DNA of 64,000 nt, taken from assembly GCF_964194025.1 (NCBI RefSeq), contig NC_134476.1, forward strand, positions 54,126,001 through 54,190,000, given 5' to 3'. The notes beneath the pieces were generated by a model that saw only the letters and a program-made list of their open reading frames with translations, was not told where the DNA came from and did not search any database. Source of the stretch: Convolutriloba macropyga. Its lineage: Eukaryota. Positions 22,230 to 62,733 of this stretch are shown here, piece after piece. Made by a program: the position numbers and the translations under genes. Within the stretch, counting starts at the first letter, position 1. Every line of letters starts with the position of its first letter.

Positions 22230-22574
22230 GTAAGATTTCCTCTGCTTAACAAGTTCTGACCCTTGTTTTGTCTTGATATAGTGAACTGTAACGGCAAATC
22301 ACTTTGGGTTGTTGTAAGTGAAGGCGCACGAGGGACAAAACACTGAATCAGTCGACAGTACTTATGTTATATCTGTTCTGTTATATAGTACTTTCTGGTT
22401 CTGTTACCAGGTTGTTCTATCAAAATTTTTATGTAAAAAAGGAATATAAGGAGTCCTGTCACTGAAACCTGTCACTGAGACGACGGATTACAAGACAGAG
22501 ACAACAATCGCCCGAAAACAGTGGACTCACAATCACTATTCAAAACTCCTGAAAAGTTTTAGCTGCTTACTCTT

Positions 22575-22866: not shown

Positions 22867-22934
22867 CTGCCTATTAAGTTATTCATCAACAATCCGTTAA
22901 GACAAATCAAAATCTTTTGCATGTGCTAGCCAAG

Positions 22935-23831: not shown

Positions 23832-23846
23832 CTATACACACTCGAA

Positions 23847-26675
23847 ATGCTTTCGTTCAATGTAAGGAGTCTGATGAAATTTGAGCGTCGCCTGAAGTTC
23901 TCAGACTGCTTGTCAACGCGAAGCTATGACATTTTATGCCTCACTGAAACATGGCTGACTCCTGATGTTCAAAACTATTCGCTCTTCCTACCTGCATACA
24001 CGATCTACCGAAATGACAGAATACCATGCGAACACGAAACGAAACACGGTGGCGTACTTATAGCAATCAGATCGACTATTATGCACGAACAAATTTTGAT
24101 TGACCTACATCTTGAGGATTTTGTGGTGATTAGTGTACAAACAAAACCACAGCCGACTCTCATATGCTGTTTGTACAGCCCCCCATCAGACAGCGACTAC
24201 ACCTGGTCGCCGCAACAGTTAGAAATTCTGCTCTCCAAAATATCAAATCATGCTAAAAGAATAGGCTACCAAGGCGTGTTCATTTGTGGAGACATCAACT
24301 TCTCCAAAACAGACTGGAACAACATGAGCTCCAATTCCGAGTGTGAAAACGCTGTTCTGGATGCTCTTTCGGAATACAATTTCCTGAACTACTCAAATCT
24401 TCAGTTAGACGTCATTCTGGCCAACAACCCTGACCAGATTGTCAAAACTGATCTTGACACCGATCTTTACAACTGTTACGCACTAAACGGCAAGCCATGT
24501 GCTGATCATCTACCGGTCAGTGTTACAGTAAACGCATTCCATAGCGAACTATACATTCTTCATCAAGTCAAATATGCCTTTAAGAAAGCGGATTGGGACG
24601 AATTGAATAAGGCTATAGTAGACAGTCCTTTCAACCCTTACTGTTTCAGTAATCTCGATTTCCTTGTCAAAAAATGGTACGAATGGATCTTCAGCCTCAT
24701 CGATCATTTCATTCCGAAAGTTACAAGACACAGGTCAACGCTTCCACCTTGGGTATCCAGCCGTACCTCACACCTGATGAAGAAGTTAGCTACAAAAAAG
24801 AAGCAATGGGTCTCTCCGGTCTTGTCAAAACTCCTGAAGTTGAAGAAAATGGAGCGTCAAATAAAAGAAGCCACAAATGAAGATTTGAAAATGTTTGAAA
24901 CCGAAATCTTTCAAAGTCGACAGTTCAGCAACATCCAGAAGTACCTACGTTGTGTTCGCAAGTCACCAAACGTTCCTCCTGTCGTCACTCTGTCCACTCA
25001 AAAAGCCGAAACTGACCAAAAAAAGGCCAAATTATTCAATCAGTTTTTCCAAAGTGTTTTCAACGAGAAGCAACATCACTGCATAACTTTTGAGAACAGA
25101 GGCCTCAATAGTCTCCTTTTCTCCGAAACAGAAATCGAGCACATATTGGAACACTTAACTCTGAACAAGTCTACGGGACCTGACAACATCGGAAACATTG
25201 TTTTAAAAAAGTGCGCCTTCTCACTCAGCAAGTCACTCCTCCTCCTATTCCAAACAATCTCGAATAAAGGAATCTTCCCCAGATACTGGAAAATCAGTCA
25301 AGTTACGCCAGTGTTCAAAGGGGGAAACAAATCAGACACTACTTGTTATCGACCGCTTAGTTTACTCTGCTGTGTGTCAAAAGTCCTTGAGCGTCTCATC
25401 TTCAACACACTATACAAGTTTTGCCAACACCGCCTACACGAAAACCAATATGGATTCCGAAAAAATAGGTCAGCAGTGGTACAATTGTTGGTCTACCTTG
25501 ATTCAATTTACCAAAAGTACGATGACCCCACAGTAGACAACCTGACAATTCTGTATCTCGACTTTGCTAAGGCCTTCGATAAAGTACCGCATGACTTGCT
25601 TATACTGAAACTCCAGTCCTTTGACATTGGCGGAAAGTTGTTGCAACTCATAAGCTCCTACTTGAGCGTCAGGGAGCAAAATGTTAAAATAAATGCGGAA
25701 ACATCCACTCCAGTAAGTGTCAGCAGTGGAGTTCCACAAGGCTCCATTCTCGGACCACTGCTCTTTCTGCTGTTCATAAATGATCTACCAGCTTCAGTGT
25801 CAAATTGTGAAAGTTTTGGATATGCCGATGATTTCAAGATAATTGCACTGACTCAGAGCCAACTCACGATTGGTGCCATGACTATACAGAATTGGTGCTC
25901 CGAAAACAAAATGCAACTGAACACCTCTAAATGCAAGCTCCTCAACATAAAAGGCACTTTGACAGCAGCAATAGACAACCTTGAAATTGAACCGACGAAT
26001 CTTCAGCGCGACCTAGGACTATGGATCACCTCAAATCTCACGTGGAACGATAACTGTACCACGAGAACGAAGAAGGGATTAAGTGCACTGTTCCAACTGA
26101 AACGAAACCTGTCTACAAACAGCACGCGAAACAGTAAGCTAAATTCTTACGTTGGTTACGTTGTGCCAGTCCTGACCTACTGCTCTCAAGCATGGCAGCC
26201 GAACAAGTCGAATCTTGCGAAGTTTGAAAGGGTGCAGGAAATTGCTACCAAGTGGATACTGAATGCAAGTTTTGAATACAAAGATCGACTTCTACAGCTA
26301 AAGCTGCTGCCTCTCAGCTTATATGTCGAAATGCACAATCTCCTGCTTCTGATATCATTGGATAGAAACGAATACGACGTTGTTGTTGATCTACCTAGAG
26401 TCACCGAAGATAAAACTCGACAGCATACAAGAGGAGAACTGACGATCGGAACGAATCGACTCTACAAAACCGATGAAAACTTCTTCCATCGTACAAAATT
26501 ATTATACAATATTATTATCAGAGTGTACACCAGCTACGGAAAATATCTCAATAAAGACACCATCTCCAAAATCTACTGGGACTACTTTCTGAGAAAATAT
26601 GACAAGAGGGACAAATGCACTTGGCGAATTGTTTGCAAATGTGACCACTGCAATAACTGGAAAAAACTAGACTAA
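23847..26675 (+). CDS. LINE ORF2: AP endonuclease plus reverse transcriptase (942 aa)
   Basis: FNVRS, LTETWL, GDIN, DHLP, then YRPLSLL, LDFAKAFDKV, GVPQGSILGP, YADD, and C-terminal CTW-x3-CxCxxC. Confidence 0.97.
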   Translation: MLSFNVRSLMKFERRLKFSDCLSTRSYDILCLTETWLTPDVQNYSLFLPAYTIYRNDRIPCEHETKHGGVLIAIRSTIMHEQILIDLHLEDFVVISVQTKPQPTLICCLYSPPSDSDYTWSPQQLEILLSKISNHAKRIGYQGVFICGDINFSKTDWNNMSSNSECENAVLDALSEYNFLNYSNLQLDVILANNPDQIVKTDLDTDLYNCYALNGKPCADHLPVSVTVNAFHSELYILHQVKYAFKKADWDELNKAIVDSPFNPYCFSNLDFLVKKWYEWIFSLIDHFIPKVTRHRSTLPPWVSSRTSHLMKKLATKKKQWVSPVLSKLLKLKKMERQIKEATNEDLKMFETEIFQSRQFSNIQKYLRCVRKSPNVPPVVTLSTQKAETDQKKAKLFNQFFQSVFNEKQHHCITFENRGLNSLLFSETEIEHILEHLTLNKSTGPDNIGNIVLKKCAFSLSKSLLLLFQTISNKGIFPRYWKISQVTPVFKGGNKSDTTCYRPLSLLCCVSKVLERLIFNTLYKFCQHRLHENQYGFRKNRSAVVQLLVYLDSIYQKYDDPTVDNLTILYLDFAKAFDKVPHDLLILKLQSFDIGGKLLQLISSYLSVREQNVKINAETSTPVSVSSGVPQGSILGPLLFLLFINDLPASVSNCESFGYADDFKIIALTQSQLTIGAMTIQNWCSENKMQLNTSKCKLLNIKGTLTAAIDNLEIEPTNLQRDLGLWITSNLTWNDNCTTRTKKGLSALFQLKRNLSTNSTRNSKLNSYVGYVVPVLTYCSQAWQPNKSNLAKFERVQEIATKWILNASFEYKDRLLQLKLLPLSLYVEMHNLLLLISLDRNEYDVVVDLPRVTEDKTRQHTRGELTIGTNRLYKTDENFFHRTKLLYNIIIRVYTSYGKYLNKDTISKIYWDYFLRKYDKRDKCTWRIVCKCDHCNNWKKLD

Positions 26676-34151: not shown

Positions 34152-35183
34152 ATGTTTGAGTTTCGACGTGGAGTAAAACGGTGTGTGACAATTTATTCTC
34201 TGGCGTTCAGCAACGATTCACTCCTTCTTGCCTGTTGCAGTAACACTGAAACTATCCACATATTCAAACTAGAATCAGCCTCAGCCAGCAGAGGCTACTC
34301 TAAATCAGTAGCTTCAAATGGACCTCACAGTGCGGCCTCAAATCCAAGTTTAGACGACAATTCAAATAGTCGGACATGGATAGGATATTTCGGTCAGGCA
34401 ATTCTGGACAGTGCTTCCTATTTACCAACAAATGTAGGGGAGATGTTTACTCAAGGAAGAGCAGCGTTTCAAGCCAGGATACCATTCTTTTCCGAAGATT
34501 CCACCTACTTTAATACGTGTGCTCTGACATGGATCAATAAAATTTTACGGCTTGTCGTTGCTAGCACCTCTGGTCAGCTTTACATGTATAACGTGGATCT
34601 ATCAGATTCAACAGGTGAATGTCCTCTGATAAGGCAGCATAAAATTGACGGCAGCACTGGCCTGGGTGTGGGAGGAAGTCGCAAATCGAATGGTTCCAAC
34701 AACAACATCTCAAGAGGTTCCAATTCAAGTCCGCTATCAGAAAACTCTAAAAGGGTTTCAGGTGCTTCTAATAGTCGATCGAACTCGGCCACATCGTTTG
34801 ACTATGCTGCTACTCAAAACAACGTTGTCACCACCGAAGACTCAGTGAGTCCTCTAGGTGGTGTTGACATCCCTCCATCTCCGATTGCAAGGTGGTCGGA
34901 GTTCGATGAAAGAGATCCAAAATTTGCTCCGAGTGGAGCACCGTTAGCATATCCGTACACAGCGCCTGTTGTGGGATCATTTGGCTCGTCATTGAATGAC
35001 AGGCAAGGATCATCACCAGGCAGTAATTCTGCCAATCAGGGAGGTGTAACCTATGCCGGTATGTTAGGAACGTCGCCTTCGGGTGACAGAAGTCTTGATG
35101 ATGTCTCTGCCCGGTTCAAAGGAGGCATCAAAATTGACGATGAAAACGAGTTTCCGCCTATGACTATGCATACGGATGATTGA
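34152..35183 (+). CDS. WIPI2: WIPI1/2 coding exon 3 (terminal); spliced product 557 aa
   Basis: tag|ATG acceptor. Contains the FRRG phosphoinositide-binding motif, SNTETIHIFKL, a Ser/Asn-rich tail and C-terminal EFPPM. Confidence 0.95.
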   Translation: MFEFRRGVKRCVTIYSLAFSNDSLLLACCSNTETIHIFKLESASASRGYSKSVASNGPHSAASNPSLDDNSNSRTWIGYFGQAILDSASYLPTNVGEMFTQGRAAFQARIPFFSEDSTYFNTCALTWINKILRLVVASTSGQLYMYNVDLSDSTGECPLIRQHKIDGSTGLGVGGSRKSNGSNNNISRGSNSSPLSENSKRVSGASNSRSNSATSFDYAATQNNVVTTEDSVSPLGGVDIPPSPIARWSEFDERDPKFAPSGAPLAYPYTAPVVGSFGSSLNDRQGSSPGSNSANQGGVTYAGMLGTSPSGDRSLDDVSARFKGGIKIDDENEFPPMTMHTDD

Positions 35184-48004: not shown

Positions 48005-50042
48005 GTATGCAATTTCACAATTTTTGGTAAACTTTTGGAGTCAATGGTGCTATGATTCCACCGGTCTGTGTGTGTTATTTATGTGGTTTTGTTCCACTTA
48101 GCTAGAGCTATATTGACGTTGTAATTGTTTTCCTTGCCGCGTGTCAAAAAATATGGAAATTGTATTTTGTTGAAGTTGTACCACGAACAGTGGCTGCTTT
48201 TTCCAAAAATGCTTTACCAGAATATTTTTTCTTTCTCTGGTTGAAACCAATTGTTCATTTCGGAAGATTTCACGCAACTTTTCGCTGCTTTGGTCCCATA
48301 GTTCAAAGTTAAACTACAACGTAAATACCCCTGAAAAAGTTTTGGCTAAGATTTTTTGATGAATGGGGATCCTTCTGCGTTATTCTGGAACCAAATAACA
48401 GCGCTGTTCTTGATAGATTTTTTGAAAAAAAAACATGGGCAGTTGGAACTTGGGTGTGTCAGTTGGGAAACATGGGCGGTTCTCGATTGCAGAATACTAC
48501 TTGTCAACAACCTTAATGCAATCTCTCAGAGTGCTAATCACTCGTGTTGGATTGCTATCGTTTAAAAAATGGTATTATCTCAGCTTATTTTATGGAGAGC
48601 TCATAGTTACTTAAACCATGTTTCTTCATTAAATCAATTGAGACGGAAAAAGTATCGTCATGTTTAAAACATATTCTTCCTTACCGTTCTAATTAGAAAG
48701 TTTCGATTTTATGATTTTGCTCATTCAGAGCGCCAACTCATTTTGAAAGCATTAAAAGCGCTAATTTGATTACGGGCCCTTGCGCAATTTTTTAGTTTTC
48801 AAGACAGTTAGAAAAAAAAACACGTATGAAAGCAAGTTTTTTCAAAATTTATTTTTAGAAAATTTATTGTAACGTGTCAATGGAACCTTTTGATAAAAAG
48901 AGCTGATAGTTTTCTAACGCATTTTGAATTCTTTTTAATTGCTCTCGAACGAATTTTAAACATGTTGGTCTTTTTTATGCAAATATTTTCTTGACCGTTT
49001 TAACTTTTCGGGAAAAGTGAATTTTACGCCGTTGACGGTTCATTTTGCGTGATCTAAGTTCTTCTCATTAACAAGTGTCAGCAGCTGAACTCGACTGGCG
49101 GCAGTTCGCTACTAAGAGTCAATTAAAAAGTGTGCCAAAATTTTTTTCACTTTAAGTTTTATGAGTGGTTATAGTGTTATCTAATAACCTCTAATGACGT
49201 CATTTGAAGCCCCCATTAGTGAATTTAGTTACTCCTCGCACCAGACTGAAGCAGGCTGCAATATATTTGAGCTCACACTATTTGTTCCAGAGCAATTGTC
49301 CGACGTTAGTGAAAAAAAGGTCCTTAACAAATAAAAAAAACATAGCAGGACAAGCCCTGAGATACAATGCAAAGGACTGAATGAGAAACTTAGAACTACT
49401 GCATCTGACAGCAGATCGATTGAACAATGCCAGGCAAAACGGCAAAGTTCCAAAATTAGAGTGAAATGAATGAGTTATTATTCCAATTAATTAGAATCGA
49501 CTGTACAAAAAATAGGTCAACACATACCTCCTCGCCTATCAAACCTTGGTTCCCTAAAAATGGTTTCGTTTTTTTTCTTTCACATAGCATTATTTTCGGC
49601 TTGATGTTACCTCAAATTTAAAGCCAACACAAATGAAACAGTTGCTCGAATAACTTGAGAAGCAAGACTTTTTATAGCACTCAACGATGTTCATTATTAG
49701 ATTCTTGTGCTCTAAGAGAAAGTTGAAAACTGGTGCAGACAGCTTTGTGGGAACACTTGGACTTTCGAGTTGTTTTGAAAGAGTTCTGTTCATTTTAAAC
49801 TGCTTTTAGTTGGCGTGATTTTTTTTGTGCTATCCAAAAGTTCTTTTTTTTTGTTCAATTTTTTTGGTCGGCCATCAATCAGTGGTTCCGTGGCAACTTT
49901 TTTGAAACAATGTCTTACTGGGTTACAGGCGACCAGAAGGCTCATCGTTTTATCAGGGAAAATGGCAAGGAAGACAGTGTTCTTCATGCAGTGTCATTTT
50001 AGTTAGAATGTTAATGTGCAATTTGAGCTTGTGGCCTCTAAT

Positions 50043-50474
50043 TATACTCGCCGCTTAAATGGGAGTATACAAAGAGAGTTTAACTTTAAAGTTCTAAAGA
50101 CAAAAGGAATGGAATTAAAAATTTTATTATAAAAACAGTTAAGGCGGTACAGTATGAATAATGAGTTAAGCAATATCGATATCATATGTTTACTTTATCA
50201 ATCTATTGAGCAAGTGTGTGGTGACAATTGAAGAGAGGAATATCAGATGGCTAACTAAATTGGAATTGAAGTGAACAAATGGTTGAAGTGAACGATACTG
50301 AATAACTGAATAACTGGTTGATATAAAAACTAGCTTCCTATATATAGTCAGCAAAGTGGGAATTAATTTCCCATATTTTTAAAAGTGGGATAAAACATCC
50401 CATATTAGTTTTTGGGATAAAAGTTCCCATTTTATTTTTGGGATAAAAGTTCCCATTTTCTCATTTTCAGTACA
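50043..50474 (-). repeat. 3' LTR (TGTACT...AGTATA termini; AATAAA at 50128-50123)
   Basis: Identical to 61633-62064 except one substitution (50091 vs 61681). Terminal hairpin tatactc-N13-gagtata. Confidence 0.97.
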
Positions 50475-50618
50475 TCCAACCGGCGACTTAGCGGGTTTTG
50501 TTGTAACTAGCTGGATATACAAAGTTAGACATAAAAATTTAGATATAAAAATTTACAGACATGTTTAAAACAAAATTAAGAATAAGATGGTTTCTAGAAT
50601 AAGAATAAGTTTCTAGTT

Positions 50619-51236
50619 TTAGTTTCCTTCAAGTTGATTTATTCTGTTTTGCAAAAATTTTATTCGGTTCATTAGATTCGCGTTCTTCTTCTTCTCTCGT
50701 AAGAAGTTTTGCTCCAGTCCCAGCGTGTATGTGTCCCGCTCGTTGTTGAGGTCTGCGGTTATGAACTGGTAGGGGACTGTTAAGTTCTGTCGGTCGAGGG
50801 ATATATTCTTTAGTCGATATGTCTTTAATTTTGAGTTATAAGATTGGATCTTATAAATATTTCCCTCTGGTAGCACTCTGTATTGGAGGCCCCAGTCAAA
50901 GTTTGGGTGTCCTCTAAATTGCCTATTCCTCGTTCTTTCTTCGTTGAATTTCTGTTTTTCCAATCTCTGGCTCATGCTAAGGATTCGTGGCTGTATAGGG
51001 CAAATTGTAGCTGTGGGTTTCATGTGGGTGGCTGTCGGAGCAATCGTAACTTCTGTTAAATCCAATTTTTTTTCTCCTCTCCCGGTATTGATAGTGTGAA
51101 TACTCTTCCCTGGTGTAGTTCGTACTGGTTGTTGTTCTGGTGGTTCCTGTTGCTGGCCCATCAGTTCCTCGAAGGTATCGGGGAGAATGAAGTCATCTAG
51201 GTCTGGCATGTCATCGTCACCTTCGTATCCTAAATT
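50619..51236 (-). CDS. 3' accessory ORF / predicted exon 2 (acidic start, basic middle, leucine-zipper C-terminus)
   Basis: 196 aa ORF from the ATG at 51209, extendable by 9 codons to the acceptor ttatttctatttttag| at 51237 in phase 0. Confidence 0.75.
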   Translation of the reverse strand, partial: NLGYEGDDDMPDLDDFILPDTFEELMGQQQEPPEQQPVRTTPGKSIHTINTGRGEKKLDLTEVTIAPTATHMKPTATICPIQPRILSMSQRLEKQKFNEERTRNRQFRGHPNFDWGLQYRVLPEGNIYKIQSYNSKLKTYRLKNISLDRQNLTVPYQFITADLNNERDTYTLGLEQNFLREKKKNANLMNRIKFLQNRINQLEGN

Positions 51237-51359
51237 CTAAAAATAGAAATAACATAAATGTGTAGTATGGATAAGATATTTATTTTCTATATATATAACA
51301 AACTAATTATTTGTGTTTTTATTTATAGTCGTGTATATTTTTTAAAGTCATTATTGCTT

Positions 51360-53570
51360 TTATACGGGAGAAATTGGATTATCTCCATTTTCTTCTATTG
51401 CAACATTGTTTTCATGTCTTTCATTTCTAATTGCACTATATAATGGGTGCGGAATATGTGGATATAGATTAAAGTGTGTTTCTTTCATTTCAGTTACTAA
51501 ATGTTCAGCATCATCTGGCTGTTTCTCATTGGTTGTCTCATTTTTAAAGATAGAAGTCATAATAGAAGTGAACAGAATATTGTAAGTGGCAAATAAGATG
51601 ATTTTGCCAAAATTAACAGAAGCTCCTGTTATTTTATGTATTTGTAGGGCTTTTACAATTGTTACAACAATTTGAATAATAAATTTCAAGAAAAGAAAAG
51701 CGGCAAAATAAATTCCACATTGCTCTAAGATAAATTGTGTATAACCGAACATTTCTATATAGCGGTTATCAAAGAAATTAGGAGAAATAAAAGAGTCTAA
51801 GTAGACTGTTCTCATTGGATAGTTAAGATAAGTTCTATCCTCACTTTTAAAATTATCTTGAGAAACAACAAGTTCTTTAGAGAAAGTTTGTATAGCATCT
51901 TTCATTTCGTTATTGAATTTAATTCCGCGCCAGAATTTCTTTAATTCTTGATCAGTAAATAAATATATTTCATCACTATCCTGGAATTTGTATTTAGTTA
52001 ATCTCTGTGGAGCAATATTAGGTTCAAAAACAGAGGGTCCTTTGACTCTAGTTATACCCGGTGTTAATTCAACCCAGGAGTTATCATCTTCAATATCTAA
52101 TTGAAATAAATTATCGTGTTTATCTACACATGATCGTTCTTCAGCGCTAGTGTATGTCTTTCTAGTAATTGGATCAACGAAATGTATTTTATTTTGATAC
52201 ATTATTGGAATTCTATTATAACATTTCTCCATAATTTGTAAGGGTGAAAAATACTGTGGGCAATGATATAGCCATGCAACATTATCATTAGTCTCTAAGA
52301 ACATTGAGCGATTATTTGTTAGTAAGAATCCAGCCATACGTGGATTACTATGCGAATAGACTAAATTTGTTCTCTTTATAGCACGTTCTAACTCACAATC
52401 GGTTTTTATCATTTGTAAATCTAAAAGCTGTAGTCTTCTTATATTAGTATATTCGTAATAGTCAAATTTCGTTCCCATATGGGCTTCATAATTTATTCCT
52501 GAGTGCAAATCAATATTTGGCTCTCCATTTGTATATGAAGTTCGTTTTACGAGCAATTTGCCTCTTGTGCTATTTACATAAGTATTTTTTTACAACATTT
52601 GGAATTGGTTTTTTGCCTTTCCTGTATCCATATCGAATCCTCCTTCATAATGTATATATAATGAGCTATAAGGAGTAGGATAAACTATTTTGTTTGAGTC
52701 GCAAATTGACTGTGGATTATTATAAATCTGAAAAATGAAAGTATTTCGTGGCCCTTTAAATGGTTGCGCACGTCTAATAACAGCTTCTGTTGATTCAGGT
52801 TCAGTTTCATATTCTCTTACTATATAATATTTTCTATCTATTTGTATCATTTTTACTGGAGCTGTGTGTAATTCTTCTATTATACAATTTTCTCTATTTT
52901 CCCATGTATATGCATAAGGATCAGTTGATCCACTGTCACAGCCATTTTTGTTTAGGCTACAAGGCAGAGGAATATTATAGTGGTTATTTACCGTTCCATC
53001 TTCTAAATTTACTAGTAATTTAATATCTTGCATATATGTCTCGTAAGTATCGTGGTAGATCCATCCTGTTTCTGTGCACTCATTACTGTATTTATCACTA
53101 ACGTCGCCCTTATTTATAACTGTTTGTTTCTTTACATTTTTTGTAAATGGAACTTTGTTAGTGTTAATAGTCGCGGAGCCTGTTTTCTTAGCTTCGAGAC
53201 ATTGCTCGGCTGTTAATTTAATATCTGAGCTAATAGTTGCTTGTGTAGCGGATAAACCACTATCGTCAAAAGTATCACAATACCACTTTAGGCGTTGATG
53301 TGTAGCTTTACACATAGTTGCTTCTAATTTAGTCTTATAATTGCGCTGCATAATAGTAGCAGTTGCCTCACTTACTTTTATTTTCTCAGTATCGATATCG
53401 CATGGAGCTATTTTGTTTAATGAGTACATTTTATTAGAATCTATTTTAGAACAATCAAAGTGTCCTACTTTTACTTTCTTTAGAGTATTTTTAAATTCGG
53501 AGTCTGCGTTGGCTCCATTTATTGAAAGTAGTGTGGAAATTATTAGAGGTACAATTACAGGTACTCTCAT
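51360..53570 (-). CDS. env: Env-like class III fusion glycoprotein (chuvirus/Monjiviricetes-like), ~736 codons, with one in-frame TAA at 52592-52590
   Basis: Signal peptide MRVPVIVPLIISTLLSINGANA. Cys pattern FDC, CKATHQRLKWYC, LPCSLNKNGC..YTW, CELER, LYHCP, CYNRIPI, FVDPITR. C-terminal TM. The two track ORFs are in the same frame, separated by a single stop. Confidence 0.85.
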
Positions 53571-53618
53571 ACTGAAAGGGTAGAAATTTGAACAAAGAAG
53601 AATTATAAATTTACTTAC

Positions 53619-53702
53619 TTCGATTATTTCGTCCAACACTTCTGGATCGGGCTCGGGGAACTGAAAGCTGGTTAGCTCAACTGTTTCTTGTTCTGAATTC
53701 AT
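53619..53702 (-). CDS. Predicted exon 1 of the spliced accessory protein (28 acidic codons)
   Basis: ATG at 53702, MNSEQETVELTSFQFPEPDPEVLDEIIE, then the consensus donor GAA|GTAAGT in phase 0. Confidence 0.6.
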
Positions 53703-53703
53703 C

Positions 53704-53922
53704 TTAATATTCAATTATGTTAGTGAAGGTATGAATGCTTGAAGGGATTTTAAATTCGAAGTTGAATTTTAAGGCAGCGAATAGACTTGATGTGTCTTTC
53801 ACTAGAAAAGTCTCTGTGGTTAAATCGGAAAAGAGGAAAGTAGCGTAAATAACGCTTAAGTCGTTAGCAGGAAAGAAAGTGGATTTCAATTTGGCTAGTT
53901 TGCCGTTGATTCTGATAAGCAT
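53704..53922 (-). CDS. 72 aa ORF just downstream of the internal promoter (uORF or small accessory protein)
   Basis: First ATG after the predicted TSS. Its TAA is followed after one base by the ATG at 53702. No recognisable motif. Confidence 0.35.
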   Translation of the reverse strand: MLIRINGKLAKLKSTFFPANDLSVIYATFLFSDLTTETFLVKDTSSLFAALKFNFEFKIPSSIHTFTNIIEY

Positions 53923-53949
53923 TTAAATGCTGACTAAGAGATGAAGAAG

Positions 53950-54240
53950 GAAGAATGATTTTTTGTGTTTTTGCTCCCTTATTTATAGTGTGCAAAATGG
54001 GCTGTTTCATCTCACTTTTAGAAATATGTCTCAAATATTCCCATTTTTAGTGACGGTTTCTGTCTTTTTATTGGCTGGGAAGATATTCCCATTTTTTAGA
54101 CCAGTTTGTGCAATTTCATTGGTTTTCATAGTTTGGGAATGTTTATCCCATTTTTCTATTCAAGTTTTCATTTTTTATTGGTTTTTAGAGTTGGAGTTTC
54201 TATTCTCCTTTTATTTATAAATGATAGAATTTGATTGGCT
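53950..54240 (-). promoter_or_regulatory. Predicted internal promoter between pol and env
   Basis: TATAAATAAG starts at 53987 and Inr TCATTC has its A at 53956 (-31 spacing). Four CCAAT boxes (~54070, 54118, 54177, 54234). TGGGA-N6/7-TCCCA at 54076 and 54134 plus two degenerate copies. Confidence 0.7.
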
Positions 54241-54276
54241 AATAATAAAATCTTTTTGTTCTGTGTATTTAAATTT

Positions 54277-57200
54277 TTATTTCTTTTTATCCTTTAAAGC
54301 GTCCCATGGAATAGGATCATTAAATAACTTTGTAGCAACTGCTTGTCTACCAGACCTTCTGGGTTCAGTAGGATATAATTTTTCATTTACTGATTTATTA
54401 GCTAGTGGGGTTGTAGGTTGTGTAGTAATGACTTGTGAACTACTCTGAAAGTTAAAGGGACTTATATCATGTGCTAATGGTTGGGGGGAATGAGGTGTTT
54501 GTGGATAACTAAGAGGTCCTCTTGGATATGGGGTAGATATATGCTGTGGCCTAAATGACTTACTAGGCGAAGTAACTTGCTGTTGTGTGTTAAATAATGT
54601 TCGGAGTCCTAATGTGTCAATGCCTGAATCAATCGGAGGGTTATTGCTACTACATCTAGTAGTAGTATTAGTAGAAGTAGTAGTAGTGGGTCTACTATTT
54701 GGGAGTTGCGGCGGCGTTTCAACATTGTTGAATACTGGCCAAGGCATATAGTGCATAAAATTACTAGGTTGGGTAGTATTAAATTTGTTTATGTAATGCC
54801 TGTTATAGTTATCATAGAATTGTTCGGGTTCAGCATATACAGTAGTATAATCGGCAATTAAGGGTTGTATTTCTCTTTCCTTCGGAAAATATTCTACTAT
54901 ATGGTTTCTATGCACTACTCTTTTTTGTTGCGTCTCGTCTCCTTGTATTTCATATGTTGTATTAGTTATATGTTTTGTAACAGTGTATGGACCGGACCGA
55001 AGTGATTGTAGCTTCTTAGATATAAGCAAGCTCTTAGAATGATTTTCTAGTAGGACTTTGCTTCCAATGCTGATTGGTCGTCCGAGCTTAAATCTATTCC
55101 TATATTCATGGGCTTTATTTGTAACTTGACGACAACGAGTATAAGTATTGCAATATATGTTCTTAAAATCTGTTTCGCGTTGTAGTACAGTATTGGATAA
55201 TCTATTTTGTAGTAGATTATCTACCTTTTCGTTTTTACACGAATTTTTACAATGTGTATGCGACGGCAAGTCCTGACAATATTGAGATATACAATTCTTC
55301 TTATTATCCCGCAGCAATCCTAGTCTAAGTGAAATAGGTATTTGTGGCTTTATTCCAAATATAATCTCGTACGGCGTATAACCAGTACTATAATTCACTG
55401 CTGTATTATGCGCAAATGCAAATTTGTCAACAAATTTTGCCCAATTGTTTCCAGTAGTATTTAGAAAGTGTCTAAGATAGTTTGTAAGGTGCTTATTTTG
55501 AATTTCTACTTTCCCGTTAGTCCAAGGGGAATATGCTGTTCGTGGCCTCAGTGTAATTCCAAGCTCAAAAGTCCAGTTTACAAAATCACTACTCATAAAA
55601 GCAGTACCGTTATCATGTACTATGTGCTGAGGTATTCCGAAGATAGTTATAAATTTCTCCATTTGTTTTATAGTCTCGTCAGAAGTAGCGGACTTAACAG
55701 CATATACTTGTACATATCTAGAGAATGAATCTACAACTACAAGACAGTAGTGTTTGCCATTACTAGAAGGCCGAAAAGGTCCTTTATGGTCTATATGTAT
55801 AGTGTGGAAGGGAGTTGTCTCCAATTCGCCCCATTGTTGTAAGGGTGCTTCGTTTAAATCGTGTCTTTTACTTTTATTCTTTTGACAATCTAAACAATCG
55901 TGGATTAACATAGTAACCCATTTGTACATTCCGGGCCAGTAAAAGAATCTGGATATATTGTTTAATGTACTAGCATCGCCACGGTGGCCACTCATAGGGT
56001 TACTATGTGCTAGCTCGAAGCACTTTAGAAATAGTGAGATAGGAATACATATCTTTAGTTCGAAGGAACCATTCTCATTAGGTTTATTGTAACATAGTAG
56101 TTTATAACTCTCATCTAGTAATAATAACTTATATATACTCTTGTAAGCTTTTAATGCTTTACATTGTCGAGTCATATAGTAGTGTTCAGGTTCTTTGCCT
56201 GATTCTATCCATTTCCGTACTATATGTAATACAGGGTCTTTATTTTGTTCTTGTAGTATAGTGTCAATATCTAGTTGTGCCTTTTTAGCAAATTCAGTTA
56301 ACTTCGTTAGCAAATCAGAGCAATCTGATTTGACATTCTCATTATGTAGTGCTGTTGACTCTATAATAGTATAATGCTTTGTACGCTCCTTGTAGATTTC
56401 TTTTGCCTTCTCTAGTGCATGTATTAATGTTGGATCGACTAAATTATCTATAACATCACTAAATTCGTCGTCATTATATCCTGAGTCGTCCAATTCTACA
56501 TAGTTTACTTCTTCTTGTATTTCACTATATGTATTGTCCGATTGTTTACTATCTGTGAGCTTAACTATTTGATTTATATTTTTGCCAAATTTGAAATAGT
56601 CGGCTACATTATGTATAGCATTACAAGAGTCTGTAAATCCTTCGGGTGCGTCAGAAATACTAAAATCATTATCCGATATATTCATTACTTTTCTTGTTCC
56701 ACCTTGTACTTGTGCTAGTATAGGATAAGAATCGTTAGACGAGTTTGTTTTATCCTCTTTGTGCAATACAGAGTAAGAGACTGGCTTTAAATCCGAAGTG
56801 TAGAAATTTATATCCTTAGGTATTGTTTTATGTTCAATCTGAAATTTCTTCGCTTCCTCTATTGGGACTTGTCGACTCAGTAAATCAGGAAATGCTAAGT
56901 TCTTGCCTTCGGTGTATATAATTTTTAAGTTCTGGAATTTAGTTAGGACGACTTGATATTTGAAAAATCTGTGCGAAAGTTGTCCGCGCCTAGACCATAA
57001 AAATAGTATTGGCCTGTGATCGCAAAAGAGGTATATGGGAAATGGCGATCCTATTAAATAGAATTCATACGTTTGTAGTGCGGATATAATTCCGCATAAT
57101 TCTCTATGCTGTGGGGACATTTTCTGTTCAGCTTTGTCGAATACTCTAGAGTTCGCTGATACAATTCTTTTTCTATCAGGGAATTGTTGTATAAGTATAC

Positions 57201-59940
57201 AACCAGTGCCTAAGTTAGACGAGTCAGCATGTATATGAAATGGGTAGTTCGCATTTGGAATTGCTAGTGATATATCATGTACGAACTTTTCTTTTAGTAT
57301 ATTGAATACTTTCTCGTGTTCTTCTTGCCATTTGAAATTTACATCGCCTCTTGTTAAATCGTACAAAGGCTTAGCATCTATATGAAAATTTATCACATAG
57401 TTCGAGTAGAATCCCATTGCTCCTAATACGCTAAGAACGTCAGTTTTTGATTCGGGAGTCTTTAAGTTTCTAATGTCGTCAATACGCGATATAACTGGGG
57501 AAAGTGTATTTTCTGATATAACGTGTCCGAGAAATTTTACTTTTCGTAAGAAGAACATTGTTTTATCCGGTGCGGCTTTTAAGTTAGCCTTTCTTAATAG
57601 AGCATGATATTCTTTTATTATATTGAACATTTCCTCTTTAGTATTAGATTGTAGTAGTGTATCGTCAATATATGTAATAGCCTTCTTTTCTTTTATAAGA
57701 GGTCCGAATGCATAGCGCATTAATTTACTAAAGAAATTGGGTAGTGGTTTTAATCCGTAGAAGCCGACTTGATAAGTATACTGTCTTCCTCCTATTATAA
57801 ATCCTGTTAACTTTTGTGTTTCGGGCGTTAGCGGCACTTGATGATAAGCACAAGAAAGGTCGCTGCTTGTAAAATATGATCCATTCACTCGGGTTATTAG
57901 GACTTGTAGTGGTTCTAACGGCCAACTTGAATTACTTGTGTCAGTAATAGAGTTTAGATAACGAGCATCTATTACTAGTTTGACGTAATCCTTCTTAGGA
58001 AGGATTATGATCGGGTTAACGAACCAGCTATTCATATCGTCATGTTCATCTAGTTCTCTTATAATGCCTGCTTGTATTAACTCGTCCATCAGTAATTCGA
58101 GTTTATCCCTTAAATGGAAGGGTACTTTACTAGGTCTTTGCTTTTTGAATTCTGCATTTTTTATTAGGGATATATTAAATTGTTGTTTAGTACGGCCAAT
58201 GTCATATTTATGATGTGAATATACATCGTTGTCTGTAAGCAGTATATCTGCAAGTCGAAAGAATTCGTTCTCAGTCAAGTCGGTTTGTGTAAAATCGAAT
58301 TTTTGTAGGAATTCCATTTTATTGAAGTGAGTATTTTGTCCAGCATGTACACTTGTAGTAAATTTATCTATTAATTCTTTTACTTGATATTTTGAGCGGA
58401 ATATTGGAAATTGTTCTCTTGATTTGGGTTGGCATATCCTTTTTGCCTCTTTAGAAAAGTCAGTGGCAATATCATCCTCGCTTTTACATTTCTCCACTAG
58501 TTCTCCTGCGGATAGCTCCATTATTTCGGCGATATGCTCGTCAGTGAGAGGACGATTTTCTATATTGTTTATTAACTGTAATTCTTTGCCACTAATGTAT
58601 ACATAAATAGTTATTCCCGTGTGCTTAAAGTGTTCTTCTAGTTCTTTAGCTATTCTTTTCCACAATCTGGGGTCTCCGCCACATGCTATCTTAGGCATAG
58701 CAATACACCTTATTCCGTCAAGCATAAGTGTCTTTTGTAGTTCACAAAATACTGAACAAGTTTTACTTGCTTCGTATGGGGGAGAGTTATAATATTCCTT
58801 CATTACAAGACTATATATAATCTGCTGACTATACTCATCTTGAAAATGTATTAGTTCGTGGTCTACCTTATTCTCCGATCCTATACTTTTAAAGTATTGT
58901 AGAATATTCCTCTTTAAGTTGGGGTATCTTTTAATAAGGGAGGCAGTAAAGCCTTTGTCTAATACTAAGTCTCTAGATATAGTATGGATAATAGGCATAT
59001 TAGCGTCGAATATCGAATGTTCGTCAAAGTTAATATACCTAATACACTCAGCAGTTAGGTCAGTGGATTCGGATATAGTATTTGTAGTTGTATTTAGCAT
59101 AAAACAACTATCAAGCTCTTCGCATTTATTTATAACAGAATAAGTAAATTCGTTGCAGTCACGAATACTGTATTTTTGTGTATTGTTTGTAATATCACAT
59201 ATAGTAAATCCAATTATCCCTTTATTTAGTGTAACTTGATGATTTTTGTGGTTTTCGATGAGCAGGGGAATTTGTTTTTCGTTCTTAGTACAAATAGTAT
59301 TTATAAAGCACAACTCGGTTTTTACTGTAGTCCTATTAGGTACAAAAGAAGTGCCTTTCGGAAATATATCTTGCTCACTACACTTGTGCTTGTAGAGAAA
59401 TGTAGACTTAGGTGGGATATATAGAGGCTGGTGTATTATCACTGCGTTCAATTTAGAGACTTGGGGATATTCCTTTTCATTATTTAGCGAGCCATAACTA
59501 AGAACTCCTTTATCACTAGTCTTCAGTTTTACTGCTGGAATATCAAAGTATAATGCTTTAAGAAATGTATGACAAAAATCTACTCCTAATAAATTAGAAG
59601 TTTTCTCCTCAGTAACCCATACTCTATGATTTGCTTTATATTTCCCGTCTGTATCAAAGTATGAAGTTAGTATAGTGTAGCCTATCATGCGTATTTCGGA
59701 ACCGTTATAGGTTCTTGTTTTATTGCCTGAAGTCTGGATATTTATTTGTTGTCCCAATTGGTTAAGCTCAAGAAATGTTGGGTAATTTATTATAGTGCAA
59801 GTTGATCCTGGGTCGATCATGAATTCTATTTCTAAGCCACTATGTTTTTTATTGTCTCCGGTAGCAAAGTGATATAAGTTCAAGAAAATTCGGGCTTTGG
59901 GATTTGATGTGATATTCTTATTTTTCGGAGACCGTATTAG
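54277..59940 (-). CDS. pol: Pol via -1 frameshift: protease, macrodomain, RT, RNase H, integrase
   Basis: IDPGS protease site, TARG1-like macrodomain at ~59043-58597, RT YIDD at 57672-57661, RNase H ADSS/RELCG/DHRP, integrase HHCC, D-D-E and GPY. The frame is open up to the slippery site. Confidence 0.96.
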   Translation of the reverse strand, partial: LIRSPKNKNITSNPKARIFLNLYHFATGDNKKHSGLEIEFMIDPGSTCTIINYPTFLELNQLGQQINIQTSGNKTRTYNGSEIRMIGYTILTSYFDTDGKYKANHRVWVTEEKTSNLLGVDFCHTFLKALYFDIPAVKLKTSDKGVLSYGSLNNEKEYPQVSKLNAVIIHQPLYIPPKSTFLYKHKCSEQDIFPKGTSFVPNRTTVKTELCFINTICTKNEKQIPLLIENHKNHQVTLNKGIIGFTICDITNNTQKYSIRDCNEFTYSVINKCEELDSCFMLNTTTNTISESTDLTAECIRYINFDEHSIFDANMPIIHTISRDLVLDKGFTASLIKRYPNLKRNILQYFKSIGSENKVDHELIHFQDEYSQQIIYSLVMKEYYNSPPYEASKTCSVFCELQKTLMLDGIRCIAMPKIACGGDPRLWKRIAKELEEHFKHTGITIYVYISGKELQLINNIENRPLTDEHIAEIMELSAGELVEKCKSEDDIATDFSKEAKRICQPKSREQFPIFRSKYQVKELIDKFTTSVHAGQNTHFNKMEFLQKFDFTQTDLTENEFFRLADILLTDNDVYSHHKYDIGRTKQQFNISLIKNAEFKKQRPSKVPFHLRDKLELLMDELIQAGIIRELDEHDDMNSWFVNPIIILPKKDYVKLVIDARYLNSITDTSNSSWPLEPLQVLITRVNGSYFTSSDLSCAYHQVPLTPETQKLTGFIIGGRQYTYQVGFYGLKPLPNFFSKLMRYAFGPLIKEKKAITYIDDTLLQSNTKEEMFNIIKEYHALLRKANLKAAPDKTMFFLRKVKFLGHVISENTLSPVISRIDDIRNLKTPESKTDVLSVLGAMGFYSNYVINFHIDAKPLYDLTRGDVNFKWQEEHEKVFNILKEKFVHDISLAIPNANYPFHIHADSSNLGTGCILIQQFPDRKRIVSANSRVFDKAEQKMSPQHRELCGIISALQTYEFYLIGSPFPIYLFCDHRPILFLWSRRGQLSHRFFKYQVVLTKFQNLKIIYTEGKNLAFPDLLSRQVPIEEAKKFQIEHKTIPKDINFYTSDLKPVSYSVLHKEDKTNSSNDSYPILAQVQGGTRKVMNISDNDFSISDAPEGFTDSCNAIHNVADYFKFGKNINQIVKLTDSKQSDNTYSEIQEEVNYVELDDSGYNDDEFSDVIDNLVDPTLIHALEKAKEIYKERTKHYTIIESTALHNENVKSDCSDLLTKLTEFAKKAQLDIDTILQEQNKDPVLHIVRKWIESGKEPEHYYMTRQCKALKAYKSIYKLLLLDESYKLLCYNKPNENGSFELKICIPISLFLKCFELAHSNPMSGHRGDASTLNNISRFFYWPGMYKWVTMLIHDCLDCQKNKSKRHDLNEAPLQQWGELETTPFHTIHIDHKGPFRPSSNGKHYCLVVVDSFSRYVQVYAVKSATSDETIKQMEKFITIFGIPQHIVHDNGTAFMSSDFVNWTFELGITLRPRTAYSPWTNGKVEIQNKHLTNYLRHFLNTTGNNWAKFVDKFAFAHNTAVNYSTGYTPYEIIFGIKPQIPISLRLGLLRDNKKNCISQYCQDLPSHTHCKNSCKNEKVDNLLQNRLSNTVLQRETDFKNIYCNTYTRCRQVTNKAHEYRNRFKLGRPISIGSKVLLENHSKSLLISKKLQSLRSGPYTVTKHITNTTYEIQGDETQQKRVVHRNHIVEYFPKEREIQPLIADYTTVYAEPEQFYDNYNRHYINKFNTTQPSNFMHYMPWPVFNNVETPPQLPNSRPTTTTSTNTTTRCSSNNPPIDSGIDTLGLRTLFNTQQQVTSPSKSFRPQHISTPYPRGPLSYPQTPHSPQPLAHDISPFNFQSSSQVITTQPTTPLANKSVNEKLYPTEPRRSGRQAVATKLFNDPIPWDALKDKKK

Positions 59941-61226
59941 TTTAAAGGAAATAAATCTGAGATAGCGTCACAATAGTCAACATTGTTTTCTTCCTGTTGA
60001 ATCCAACCAACGTTGTTTTCATTTTGCGTATTATATGACTTTGTCTCTTGTTGTAAAGTAGGCCTTGTATTACTATGGGCTTGATTTCTATTGAATTGGC
60101 TGTTTTCACGCTCATAAAATTGTTTAGCAGCATATTCATTTTGCCGAAATGAATTTTCTCGGGGGAATCTTTGGTCATATTGCTTATTTTGGTTAAATCT
60201 ATTGCCGTACTTGTAGCCGCTCTGGTTATTATAAAAGGAATTTGGGTTTTGGGCTCTGTTATTATAACTATTATTCCTACTATTGTATTGGTTGTTATTC
60301 CAAGCACCTCGTCTGTAGTTATTACTAAATGTAGGCTTAGTCTCTTTTTGCTCTAATAATTCCTTTCTAATCTTTTGTACTTCGTCGTCTAACTTCTTTT
60401 TGTTACAGGTAGAAATAGAGTGTCCGTGGTTTCTACAATACTCACAGAACCTAGTATTATTGGCTCGTCCTTTTATATTCGGGTCTCTATTGAAGTTGCT
60501 TGTATTTTGTATAGCACTTACTTCATTACTTTTTATTAAGCTTGTAAGTTCCTTAATTTGTGTCTCTAAGGACGATATTTTGTCTGAAGGTTGTTTAGCC
60601 GAATTCTCATTAATAACTATACAAGTTAAATCTTGTGTTATCAGATGTTCTTTTAAATCGTCCCAACTTTCGTTAGGTTTCTTAATACGCCGTTCATGTG
60701 CTTTTCGCTTTAATGAGGGGGGTTGCAGTCCCCTTATAGCAAAATCTATATATTTCTGTTCTCTTTGTCTAGATTGTATTACTGCTTCTTGCGCTCGATC
60801 AGCATTAGCTACATTTGTTAAGTCTTCTGGCCAACCTTTATCAACCGCGTGCTTGACTCTATGAAAATAATTTTTTATTAATTCGCCTTCTTGTCTAGAA
60901 GCATTTTCTACTTCTAATCTATGCTTAAATTTATCACGACCGTCAGTAAATCTATCAAGAAAGTCATTTTTAATATCATTTAAGACTTTAGCCTCATCGA
61001 TAGTATTAAAACATTCTAAGGCTGTATCGGTTAAAAGGGACCCAAATAGAGATCTCTGTCTATTTTCATAACTCTTTTTCTTATCAGGATCAGTAGGAAC
61101 AACTCCTAACGAAAATTTTACTTTTTGATCAACAGAATTCCAAAAGTCAAGAGCACTCTGACTGGGATCGTTACCTGAAAAAGTAGTTAAAGACACATTA
61201 CTCAAAGAAATAGGAGCATCAGCCAT
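59937..61226 (-). CDS. gag: Gag (429 aa) with CCHC zinc knuckle and N/Q-rich tail
   Basis: CEYCRNHGHSISTC (CX2CX4HX4C). The ORF ends at the T TTA AAC TAA slippery site. Confidence 0.92.
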   Translation of the reverse strand: MADAPISLSNVSLTTFSGNDPSQSALDFWNSVDQKVKFSLGVVPTDPDKKKSYENRQRSLFGSLLTDTALECFNTIDEAKVLNDIKNDFLDRFTDGRDKFKHRLEVENASRQEGELIKNYFHRVKHAVDKGWPEDLTNVANADRAQEAVIQSRQREQKYIDFAIRGLQPPSLKRKAHERRIKKPNESWDDLKEHLITQDLTCIVINENSAKQPSDKISSLETQIKELTSLIKSNEVSAIQNTSNFNRDPNIKGRANNTRFCEYCRNHGHSISTCNKKKLDDEVQKIRKELLEQKETKPTFSNNYRRGAWNNNQYNSRNNSYNNRAQNPNSFYNNQSGYKYGNRFNQNKQYDQRFPRENSFRQNEYAAKQFYERENSQFNRNQAHSNTRPTLQQETKSYNTQNENNVGWIQQEENNVDYCDAISDLFPLN

Positions 61227-61611
61227 TTTTATTTAAAATACTTGGACGTTTGCCAAGTCTTTATTTTATCTAAGATAAATTAAGTGTTTCTGTAAGTACC
61301 AGAGACAACTTTAGATAGTCTAAGAATTACGTCCTCTGGGTACAATTTATTTTTATTTGAGAACTTAGAAATTTTTCTAAGTCTTTTATTAAAGTCAGAT
61401 AACTGACGAAAGATAGAATATTTTAGAAATAGCTGATACAAATTTAACATAGAATTTAAAAATAGTGTTAAGTTCGACTTACTTAAGTCAGAACATAGAA
61501 ATGAGACAACTTGGAAATTTTTCCTAAGTTTTTTGCCTCGCAACAGATTTTATTTAAGTTAAAGATTAAAGTTAAAGTCTTTAAAACATAGAATTTACTA
61601 ACCTTGAGTGA

Positions 61612-61629
61612 GCCTCACTGGTCGCACCA
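61612..61629 (-). other. Primer binding site TGGTGCGACCAGTGAGGC
   Basis: Begins with TGG, 3 nt after the 5' LTR. The complement GAGCCTCAC-N5-GCACCA looks like a tRNA 3' end (Ile-UAU/Met-like T-arm); identity is uncertain. Confidence 0.85.
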
Positions 61630-61632
61630 ATT

Positions 61633-62064
61633 TATACTCGCCGCTTAAATGGGAGTATACAAAGAGAGTTTAACTTTAAAATTCTAAAGACAAAAGGAAT
61701 GGAATTAAAAATTTTATTATAAAAACAGTTAAGGCGGTACAGTATGAATAATGAGTTAAGCAATATCGATATCATATGTTTACTTTATCAATCTATTGAG
61801 CAAGTGTGTGGTGACAATTGAAGAGAGGAATATCAGATGGCTAACTAAATTGGAATTGAAGTGAACAAATGGTTGAAGTGAACGATACTGAATAACTGAA
61901 TAACTGGTTGATATAAAAACTAGCTTCCTATATATAGTCAGCAAAGTGGGAATTAATTTCCCATATTTTTAAAAGTGGGATAAAACATCCCATATTAGTT
62001 TTTGGGATAAAAGTTCCCATTTTATTTTTGGGATAAAAGTTCCCATTTTCTCATTTTCAGTACA
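61633..62064 (-). promoter_or_regulatory. 5' LTR: four TGGGA-N7-TCCCA palindromes, TATATATAG at 61936 and Inr-like CCAGTT (+1 at 61905)
   Basis: Palindromes at 61947, 61976, 62003 and 62029. The TATA box is 31 nt upstream of the Inr A. Confidence 0.85.
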
Positions 62065-62733
62065 TAATAATTGCTTCCTGAGGTCAATAATCGTAGTTTC
62101 TGGTTGGTTTACTCCTGTACACGCGAGTGCACTCGGAACTCATAAATAAGTTCGAAAGAAGGCAATATTTGGTTCTCAGTTGTTGCAAATGGATTTGTGT
62201 GATGCGTGACACGGTTATTTACCATGTTCAGTTTCATGAGACGATGACTGGCCCAAGGGGGATTTTTGTTCCGGTGACTCTAATTTATGTACAAACGCTA
62301 CCTTCGTTGAGCTTTAACTATTAAATTTTCTGTCACAATTTGTAAATGATTTGTGACAATTTAGTATTGCCAGTTATGATTGGAAGACTGAATTTTTGTG
62401 CTCTTTATGTCTGCATGGGGCTTTGTTACAATTAGTTTAAATTAAAATTGTGCTAATGCTGCCCTTCAGCATTTTATGTGTCCCAAAGTTGGAGTTTGTA
62501 TTTTAATAGTAAAGATTTGAATCCATTTTCAGAGGATTTCTGCTTGTTTGATAGCCAATGAAACGAGATTTGATTGCCGAAAATTATGTTGCCTCCGAAA
62601 ATAACTTATTATTGCAGCAACTAAAACCAATTGTGACGCTTTATGCAAATTTTAGATAAATTGTATGCGGATAATTTTGTTTCATCTGCATTTTCTGACT
62701 ATAAACATCCAAGAAGGCGTTGTTTTTTTGCAG

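Follow-up and report, generated by a model that had tools for sequence, protein, structure and literature searches.

Does the long terminal repeat (LTR) retroelement found in this stretch of the genome of the acoel worm Convolutriloba macropyga (64,000 nt of contig NC_134476.1, called here the window, to which all coordinates refer) carry a gene beyond gag, pol and env, and how might such a gene be expressed and what might it do? Complex vertebrate retroviruses are usually recognised by accessory genes spliced over env and by internal promoters, and LTR retrotransposons are taught as gag-pol(-env) elements. Our results show that the element is an endogenous retrovirus of Ty3/gypsy type that inserted recently and has gag, pol, env and a genuine fourth gene; all its features lie on the minus strand. 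An earlier note, made from the letters of the window, had proposed an accessory gene with env in its intron. Independent RefSeq models, splice sites and phase kept in several families, and purifying selection all bear this out, and we consider that the gene and its splice are almost certainly real. The broader explanation that we favour, in which this gene is expressed from an internal promoter and encodes a dimeric activator of the element, is just about probable when taken as a whole.

The gene is predicted to have two exons. Exon 1 (53619-53702) consists of an ATG (53702-53700) and 27 further codons, the last of which, GAA, ends at 53619; it encodes nine acidic and no basic residues. A 5' splice site, GTAAGT (53613-53618), follows in phase 0 and opens an intron of 2,382 nt (51237-53618) that holds all of env past its first 28 codons. 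The intron ends at an acceptor ...TTTCTATTTTTAG|, with its AG at 51238-51237, and the TAG of this acceptor is also the in-frame stop just upstream of exon 2 (50619-51236). Exon 2 adds 205 codons and a stop, in phase 0, and encodes an acidic-hydrophobic start (11 acidic and no basic residues among the first 32), a low-complexity linker, a basic helix, an SH3-like barrel and a long C-terminal helix. The donor, the acceptor, the ATG and a TATA/initiator (Inr) pair with 31-nt spacing were each found at the minus-strand positions given by the earlier note, its 233-aa product adds up (28 + 205), and the acidic-hydrophobic stretch that it described does run across the junction.

Gene models made independently of that note place the same splice. 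In the 90% cluster of the 3' open reading frame (ORF) there are four RefSeq accessions, each exactly 233 aa long (XP_075248249.1, XP_075251444.1, XP_075258953.1 and XP_075249952.1; P0170-P0172), all called 'uncharacterized protein LOC...'. Residues 1-28 of the model P0170 are those of exon 1 (28/28) and residues 29-233 those of exon 2 (205/205), hence the NCBI pipeline placed exactly the predicted splice. At the chromosomal loci L015 and L016 the 233-aa gene is the sole product on record, though env is open there for all 780 codons, which hints at transcript support behind the RefSeq models.

The first exon doubles as the beginning of env. Its ATG (53702) belongs to the env frame and is the start chosen by gene callers in intact copies, where it gives a protein of 780 aa; therefore, Env and the accessory protein share their initiator and 28 residues. 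The signal peptide of Env begins 16 codons after the end of exon 1. The downstream ATG at this signal peptide is not an ATG in three of eight copies, and in the copies compared the env frame is maintained across a 9-nt indel located between donor and signal peptide. Hence, the 28 acidic codons of the earlier note stand, but it overlooked that they begin env and are no small ORF of their own. In the window, env (51360-53702; 780 codons from the shared ATG) has one in-frame stop and no frameshift. Its two pieces match the Pfam family PF24664 (Monjiviricetes viral fusion glycoprotein, glycoprotein B (gB)-like) at E = 4e-23 and 3e-11, and the intact copy in L015 matches it at E = 6.6e-33; a search of PDB sequences gave no match for env. 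By these profile matches, env is a fusion glycoprotein of the Monjiviricetes/gB type (class-III-type). We also considered a 47-nt intron leading from the same donor to a TTTCAG| before the signal-peptide ATG of env, and rejected it: the resulting frameshift runs into a stop, and the AG is AA in all seven other copies.

The splice signals are kept among paralogous copies. A search with exon 2 returned 16 proteins of ENA, and the ten loci that we looked up (L001-L010) all come from one assembly; retrieved loci reach at most 3.6 kb either side of the accessory gene, and none spans the whole element. All eight copies that cover the region retain the ATG, the 28 codons and GAA|GTAAGT, the GTAAGT being invariant, and the acceptor ...TTTCTATTTTTAG|AATTTAGG is kept in eight of the ten, the exceptions being the two copies with most decay. 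Among these copies, all changes in the nine codons that separate the acceptor from the first ATG of the 3' ORF are synonymous. Because they are kept across the relatives compared, splice signals and phase are far beyond chance. The ratio of non-synonymous to synonymous substitution rates (dN/dS) in exon 2, which had been suggested as a check, amounts to 0.05 when the window is compared with L005-L008 (some 48 differences are synonymous and 13 non-synonymous) and to about 0.10 for L001 against L005, revealing strong purifying selection on the 3' ORF and not neutral evolution. Constraint is strongest in the barrel and the C-terminal helix (pN/pS of 0.03-0.1), and weaker in the acidic head (0.2-0.4).

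The same plan recurs in distant families. An exhaustive HMMER search found 28 relatives and a profile search found 38, with identities down to 27%, and the distant ones share a core of about 110 residues and the C-terminal helix. The profile search gave no relatives in annotated genomes other than that of C. macropyga, its matches being ENA proteins only. L014 (38% identity, from the assembly of L001-L010) has an ATG and 17 codons before a |GTAAGT in phase 0, with the signal peptide in frame, an intact env of 899 aa and an acceptor TTTCAG|. L013 (36% identity, same assembly) has a TATAAGG with ATCATTC 31 nt on, an ATG and 27 codons before |GTAAGT, and an acceptor TTTATAG| followed by acidic codons. 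L017 (31% identity, from another assembly, with 54 cluster members) has TATATAAA with ATCATTC 31 nt on, an ATG and 28 acidic codons before |GTAAGT, and an acceptor TTTTAG|. In these three families, as in the window, the donor is in phase 0 just before the env signal peptide. The closer L011 (55% identity, two further assemblies) has the acceptor TTTTTTAG| and then 47 acidic codons; its contig ends before env, leaving the exon-1 side outside. A candidate first exon of four codons with a 48-nt intron can be drawn in L011, and the 13 nt of contig upstream are too little to judge it. The AG of the acceptor lies within a frame-closing TAG in the window, L013, L017 and L011, and in L014 the in-frame stop is further upstream. 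In summary, splice sites and phase, whose conservation in relatives had been proposed as a check, follow the full plan in four families, and a fifth, partial relative has the acceptor and the open frame. As the plan recurs in diverged families, it is a trait of the family and not an accident of one copy. At every locus with the upstream region available, the accessory family is confined to env-bearing elements.

Could the 3' ORF be translated without splicing, from its own ATG at 51209? We judged this unlikely as the main route, given the nine conserved codons without ATG upstream of it and the spliced RefSeq models. Moreover, this ATG is absent in some copies, L013 has no in-frame ATG from the acceptor to the start chosen by the gene caller, and all 47 codons after the acceptor of L011 lack one.

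The protein encoded by this gene constitutes a new family without known relative. AlphaFold2, run with the family alignment, predicts that residues 1-63 of exon 2 are disordered and are followed by a helix, a small five-stranded barrel and a C-terminal helix of 35-39 residues, the folded part being modelled with a predicted local distance difference test (pLDDT) above 90. Positions 86-168 include 15 basic residues, some of them in an arginine-/lysine-rich helix before the barrel. The modelled layout is thus of some 60-85 acidic disordered residues, a basic helix, an SH3-like barrel and, at the C-terminus, a probable coiled-coil helix of about 37 residues. A basic, beta-rich middle and a C-terminal zipper had been claimed from the sequence, which is right as a shape. 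The best partial matches in Foldseek are SH3-like barrels (the KOW domains of Spt5/NusG, Tudor, PWWP, and LIN9 in MuvB), over about 50 residues at 1.7-2.4 A, with template modelling (TM) scores of 0.6-0.7 on small targets and weak E values of 0.008-0.1. The sole match among PDB sequences is a designed coiled coil (E = 0.03). The 3' ORF matches no known structural protein in Pfam, in PDB or in Foldseek searches of PDB and BFVD, and no viral regulator (Tas, Tat, Tax, Rev, Rex, Rem or Rec) is among the matches in Pfam, PDB sequences, PDB folds or BFVD folds. The protein has no signal peptide or membrane segment. We discarded two possible affiliations. Membership in the bZIP proteins has in its favour only a bZIP_2 match at E = 0.5 in one of 13 family members, the PDB match being to a designed coiled coil. 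For an origin from the element's own integrase tail or from gag, hhalign gave a probability of 0.1% in each case.

How might the gene be transcribed? A candidate internal promoter (53953-54276) lies between pol and env, with four CCAAT motifs, three AAAATGGGA repeats, a TATA box TATAAATA (53980-53987) and, in ATCATTC, an Inr A at 53956, 31 nt after the start of TATAAATA (53987). The TATA box is kept in all eight copies and the Inr in six of them, and a TATA box followed by ATCATTC at about 31 nt recurs in L013 and L017. From the pol stop to the shared ATG the spacer extends over about 575 nt, which is long; it includes 324 nt upstream of the proposed start site, conserved at 85-100%, and a 250-nt leader. 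When the core promoter of the LTR is aligned with the internal core, they agree at 24 of 29 positions, with a score of 26 when shuffles give 13.7 +/- 2.3 and one in 200 reached it. In the U3 region of the 5' LTR (61633-62064), four TGGGA-N7-TCCCA palindromes (61947-62045) are followed by a TATATATA box, with an Inr-like CCAGTT some 31 nt further; the 3' LTR (50043-50474) has the same four palindromes (50357-50455) and an AATAAA at 50123-50128. The exact palindrome occurs nine times in the window, where 0.05 are expected, and always in the element: four times in each U3 and once in the internal region (54134-54150), within the AAAATGGGA repeats, which include also a shorter-spaced palindrome (54076-54091). 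It is found in the LTR region of every retrieved locus and in every internal spacer covered, despite LTRs that are only 71-74% identical. The U3 of L017 has three TTCTGA-N7-TCAGAA, with the same N7 geometry and another half-site, and this half-site recurs next to its internal TATA box. By eye, the four CCAAT motifs are spaced by about 55 nt and interleaved with the three AAAATGGGA repeats (54070-54240, minus strand); at the equivalent place L013 has two AACCAATCAG motifs.

The leader upstream of the shared ATG (53703-53952) has its own candidate signal, a 3' splice site made of CTAAC (53863-53867), a pyrimidine tract and CACAG| (AG at 53814-53815). These three motifs are 100% conserved in 8/8 copies, within the most conserved noncoding stretch. 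At 53700-53900 the leader is 98-100% identical to L005-L008, and relative to L001 four of five 40-nt blocks are 95-100% identical and the fifth 82-88%. The leader is thus near-invariant, while exon 2 of the same copies differs at 38-77% of synonymous sites, which are saturated between the subfamilies. Its predicted RNA fold is better than those of shuffles, modestly (z = -2.5). This constancy may result from the splice site, from an RNA element, or from recent exchange between lineages.

The explanation that we favour puts these observations together as follows. The mRNA would start at the internal TATA/Inr promoter, which resembles a partial copy of the LTR core promoter. A primary transcript keeping the 2.4-kb stretch after codon 28 would give Env; joining GAA|GTAAGT (53618) to TAG| (51237) would remove env and give the 233-aa protein. 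The latter would be a dimeric nuclear regulator that acts at the N7-spaced palindromes of both promoters and raises the element's own transcription.

How well does this resist the alternatives? That the 3' ORF and its splice are due to chance or to an artefact of gene prediction is hardly credible: AT-rich DNA offers many GT/AG pairs, but these would not account for the dN/dS of exon 2 (0.05-0.1), for the 28-38 relatives given by profile searches and a folded domain modelled at high confidence, or for a donor phase and an acceptor right before an open frame that recur in families at 27-38% identity. Other points do weigh against our explanation. The splice junction is supported here by sequence comparison and gene models, and the start site is proposed from sequence comparison. 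The TATA-N-Inr arrangement, taken by itself, is within chance in such an AT-rich window (three matches for 1.26 expected, with three reached by 12 of 100 shuffles), and its weight therefore comes from conservation and not from a single sequence. The part around the proposed start site (53980-53900) is the least conserved of the region. Finally, the conserved branch-point-like motif, tract and AG in the leader would equally serve a doubly spliced mRNA driven by the LTR. There might then be no internal promoter: the Env and accessory mRNAs would start in the 5' LTR and use a donor in its leader joined to CACAG| at about 53814, the accessory mRNA being spliced a second time. An env mRNA spliced from an LTR-driven transcript is the rule in Drosophila errantiviruses and in retroviruses. 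The window copy has candidate donors, AAG|GTTAGT and TTAA|GTAAGT, in the leader upstream of gag, and the invariance of the CTAAC, tract and CACAG in the copies fits this route too. Yet, the route leaves aside the length of the spacer, the conservation of its upstream part, which copies the palindrome and core promoter of the LTR, and the TATA box followed at equal spacing by ATCATTC in L013 and L017. We see it as a serious contender that is nonetheless improbable on balance, and both routes may operate. The internal promoter is unproven, because the conserved 3' splice site of the leader allows the LTR-driven route; from sequence conservation, we think it rather probable that it is functional and derived from the LTR promoter.

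The function attributed to the protein is more tentative. We propose that it could be a transcriptional activator acting at the palindromes because it has an acidic disordered N-terminus and a dimer-type C-terminal helix, and because the promoter motifs are palindromic, but we would not call this role probable. It is weakened by the lack of any Pfam family and of any significant Foldseek match (none at E <0.001 in PDB or BFVD), and by the fact that SH3-like barrels are not classical sequence-specific readers of DNA. The palindromes could equally be sites for host factors, and neither L013 nor L014 has a palindrome common to U3 and the internal region beyond a half-site. A role in RNA export, as a post-transcriptional regulator of the Rev/Rem/Rec type that binds the element's RNA and helps unspliced or partly spliced transcripts out of the nucleus, fits about as well, and we regard it as possible if doubtful. 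In such a role, one can make sense of an N-terminus shared with Env in a protein made by removing env, as in Rem of mouse mammary tumour virus (MMTV) and Rec of the human endogenous retrovirus HERV-K, of the arginine-/lysine-rich helix ahead of the barrel, of the weak fold matches to barrels of the KOW, Tudor and PWWP types, among which several make contact with nucleic acids, and of a long C-terminal helix that could drive multimerisation. It would also fit an element whose unspliced genomic RNA must escape consensus splice sites, and the 200-nt near-invariant leader with its somewhat better fold. There is a precedent in an LTR retrotransposon of C. elegans that is reported to need its own export factor (PMC10309623). 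However, the protein has no homology to any export factor of this kind, the variation of the leader is too low for covariation, and the palindromes common to U3 and the internal region would be left unexplained. The protein might instead not regulate expression at all, and serve Env or Gag as a partner in the virion or in assembly, or else counteract a host defence. Its restriction to env-bearing elements, wherever the upstream region is available, and the failure to identify a regulatory domain in Pfam are in line with this, and SH3-like barrels and coiled coils are common protein-protein modules; we nevertheless find it unlikely for a protein devoid of signal peptide and membrane segment, whose basic helix and long, acidic and disordered head are features found more typically in nuclear factors. 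Taken together, roles other than activation or RNA export keep a substantial, though minor, share of our expectations.

These observations can be compared with known systems. Foamy viruses have an internal promoter, associated with Tas and located inside env. The acoel element resembles them in having a second TATA-type promoter candidate upstream of the first exon of its accessory gene, and in the repeated motif that this candidate shares with the U3 of the LTR, which is in keeping with a regulator that would act on both promoters. It differs from them because the candidate promoter lies between pol and env, because the accessory mRNA must still splice out env, and because the protein resembles no viral regulator in sequence or fold (PDB, BFVD). 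The closest in logic are MMTV Rem and HERV-K Rec, which share their N-terminus with Env; Tat, Rev, Tax and Rex of human immunodeficiency virus (HIV) and human T-lymphotropic virus (HTLV) are also spliced over env. As in Rem and Rec, the initiator and the first residues are shared with Env and env is removed by splicing. In contrast to them, the shared part stops before the signal peptide, the second exon is wholly downstream of env in an ORF of its own that does not overlap env, and there is no homology.

Among retrotransposons, Ty3/gypsy elements with a gB-type env are found across metazoans ('errantiviruses' in the wide sense; Chary and Hayashi, eLife 2026, PMC13524379). The acoel element has the same LTRs, gag-position ORF, pol with reverse transcriptase (RT), RNase H and integrase (IN), class-III-type glycoprotein and near-identical copies, but differs by its conserved fourth gene and its long conserved spacer between pol and env. 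Acoel or xenacoelomorph hosts, splicing and genes after env are all absent from the text of that study. ORFs beyond gag, pol and env have been described in other lineages, including the additional ORFs (aORFs) of plants (PMC7264820) and bdelloid rotifer elements (PMC5408684, cited in PMC13524379). The acoel ORF appears to differ from such ORFs in lacking a start of its own in several families and in its conserved, in-phase splice over env. Our literature searches found no report of a gene after env or of an internal promoter in Gypsy elements, and none of this protein, the 233-aa product being already in RefSeq as an uncharacterized protein. What sequence comparison reveals is thus a complex-retrovirus organisation in a Ty3/gypsy lineage, and a new protein family.

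A conserved gene spliced over env in several diverged acoel Gypsy families implies that the same genome logic arose outside Retroviridae, or that it is much older. This bears on how retroelements express spliced and unspliced RNAs and regulate themselves, and it also illustrates that 'uncharacterized protein' models in RefSeq can be accessory genes of retroelements. One may go further, and propose that an invertebrate Ty3/gypsy lineage outside Retroviridae, in a host from one of the bilaterian groups that branched earliest, independently evolved a complex-retrovirus circuit, in which a dimeric regulator, produced by removing env through splicing, would bind family-specific N7 palindromes in the LTR and in an internal promoter partly copied from that of the LTR. 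We find this full version fairly unlikely.

The remaining architecture is that of a complete element. It spans 12,022 nt (50043-62064) and is flanked by a 4-bp target-site duplication, ATTA (62065-62068 and 50039-50042). Its LTRs of 432 nt end in TG...TA and differ at one of 432 positions, therefore the insertion is young. Elements at the chromosomal loci L015 and L016 are 99.3-99.4% identical to that of the window, and the many near-identical copies indicate recent activity. A run resembling a primer-binding site, TGGTGCGACC, which starts with TGG, was read from the sequence at 61611-61629, beginning 3 nt past the 5' LTR. The ORF at the gag position (59937-61226; 429 aa), taken from the ORF list, has no match, to a capsid or nucleocapsid family or any other, in the Pfam scan, and is a putative gag by its position. 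The pol ORF (54277-59883; 1868 aa) has its domains in the Ty3/gypsy order (RVT_1 at residues 668-789, RT_RNaseH at 852-983, Integrase_H2C2 at 1281-1338 and rve at 1357-1453), with no protease model matched in the Pfam scan, and relatives have a pol product of equal length. The ORFs of gag, pol and the 3' gene are all open in the window copy. LTRs, order of pol domains and env match agree with the identification of a Gypsy element with env in the earlier note. A scan of the element with Rfam gave no known RNA family.

We made several further observations on this element and its relatives. After the integrase core, pol has a tail of about 400 residues (54277-55600, minus strand) for which the sole match is a short one to Integrase_p58_C. 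Immediately upstream of the TATA box of the LTR stands TTTGCTGAC (61930-61945 and 50340-50355, minus strand), which seems to resemble a half-site of the Maf recognition element; this element is used by large-Maf factors, by which the gypsy-group elements of Drosophila are driven in the somatic cells of the ovary. In distant relatives, long and unrelated palindromes crowd the U3 region just upstream of its TATA box, with four different ones in L013 (4237-4425) and, in L011, TGACGT-N6-ACGTCA and TGGGA-N6-TCCCA (1231-1470). Divergence between the window and L001-L010 is mosaic, with identities of 71-74% in the LTRs, 85-94% in the pol-env spacer and 77-90% in exon 2, which suggests recombination or LTR replacement between subfamilies. 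In L001, whose contig was marked as circular by the assembler, a second partial copy (4735-5619) begins about 130 nt after the 3' LTR and runs from the pol-env spacer into env, with no primer-binding site before it. It may be a rearrangement or an assembly artefact; we rejected a retrotransposed spliced mRNA as its source, since the start of the homology lies upstream of any acceptor and the LTR is not followed by a primer-binding site.

Finally, other features of the window lie outside the element. Positions 1-15,500 are occupied by a tandem array of three to four copies of a unit of about 4.3 kb (spacing of 4323 nt), 98-100% identical, and each unit has a minus-strand ORF of 156-158 aa (3026-3502, 7349-7825 and 11283-11753) without Pfam match. 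Two coding blocks of a host WIPI2/PROPPIN gene follow (21758-22249 and 34152-35183), the second of which falls in the 90%-identity cluster of XP_075254395.1 of C. macropyga. ORFs of non-LTR retrotransposons (endonuclease and RT) are found around and between these blocks, at 17118-26675, including one of 942 aa (23847-26675).

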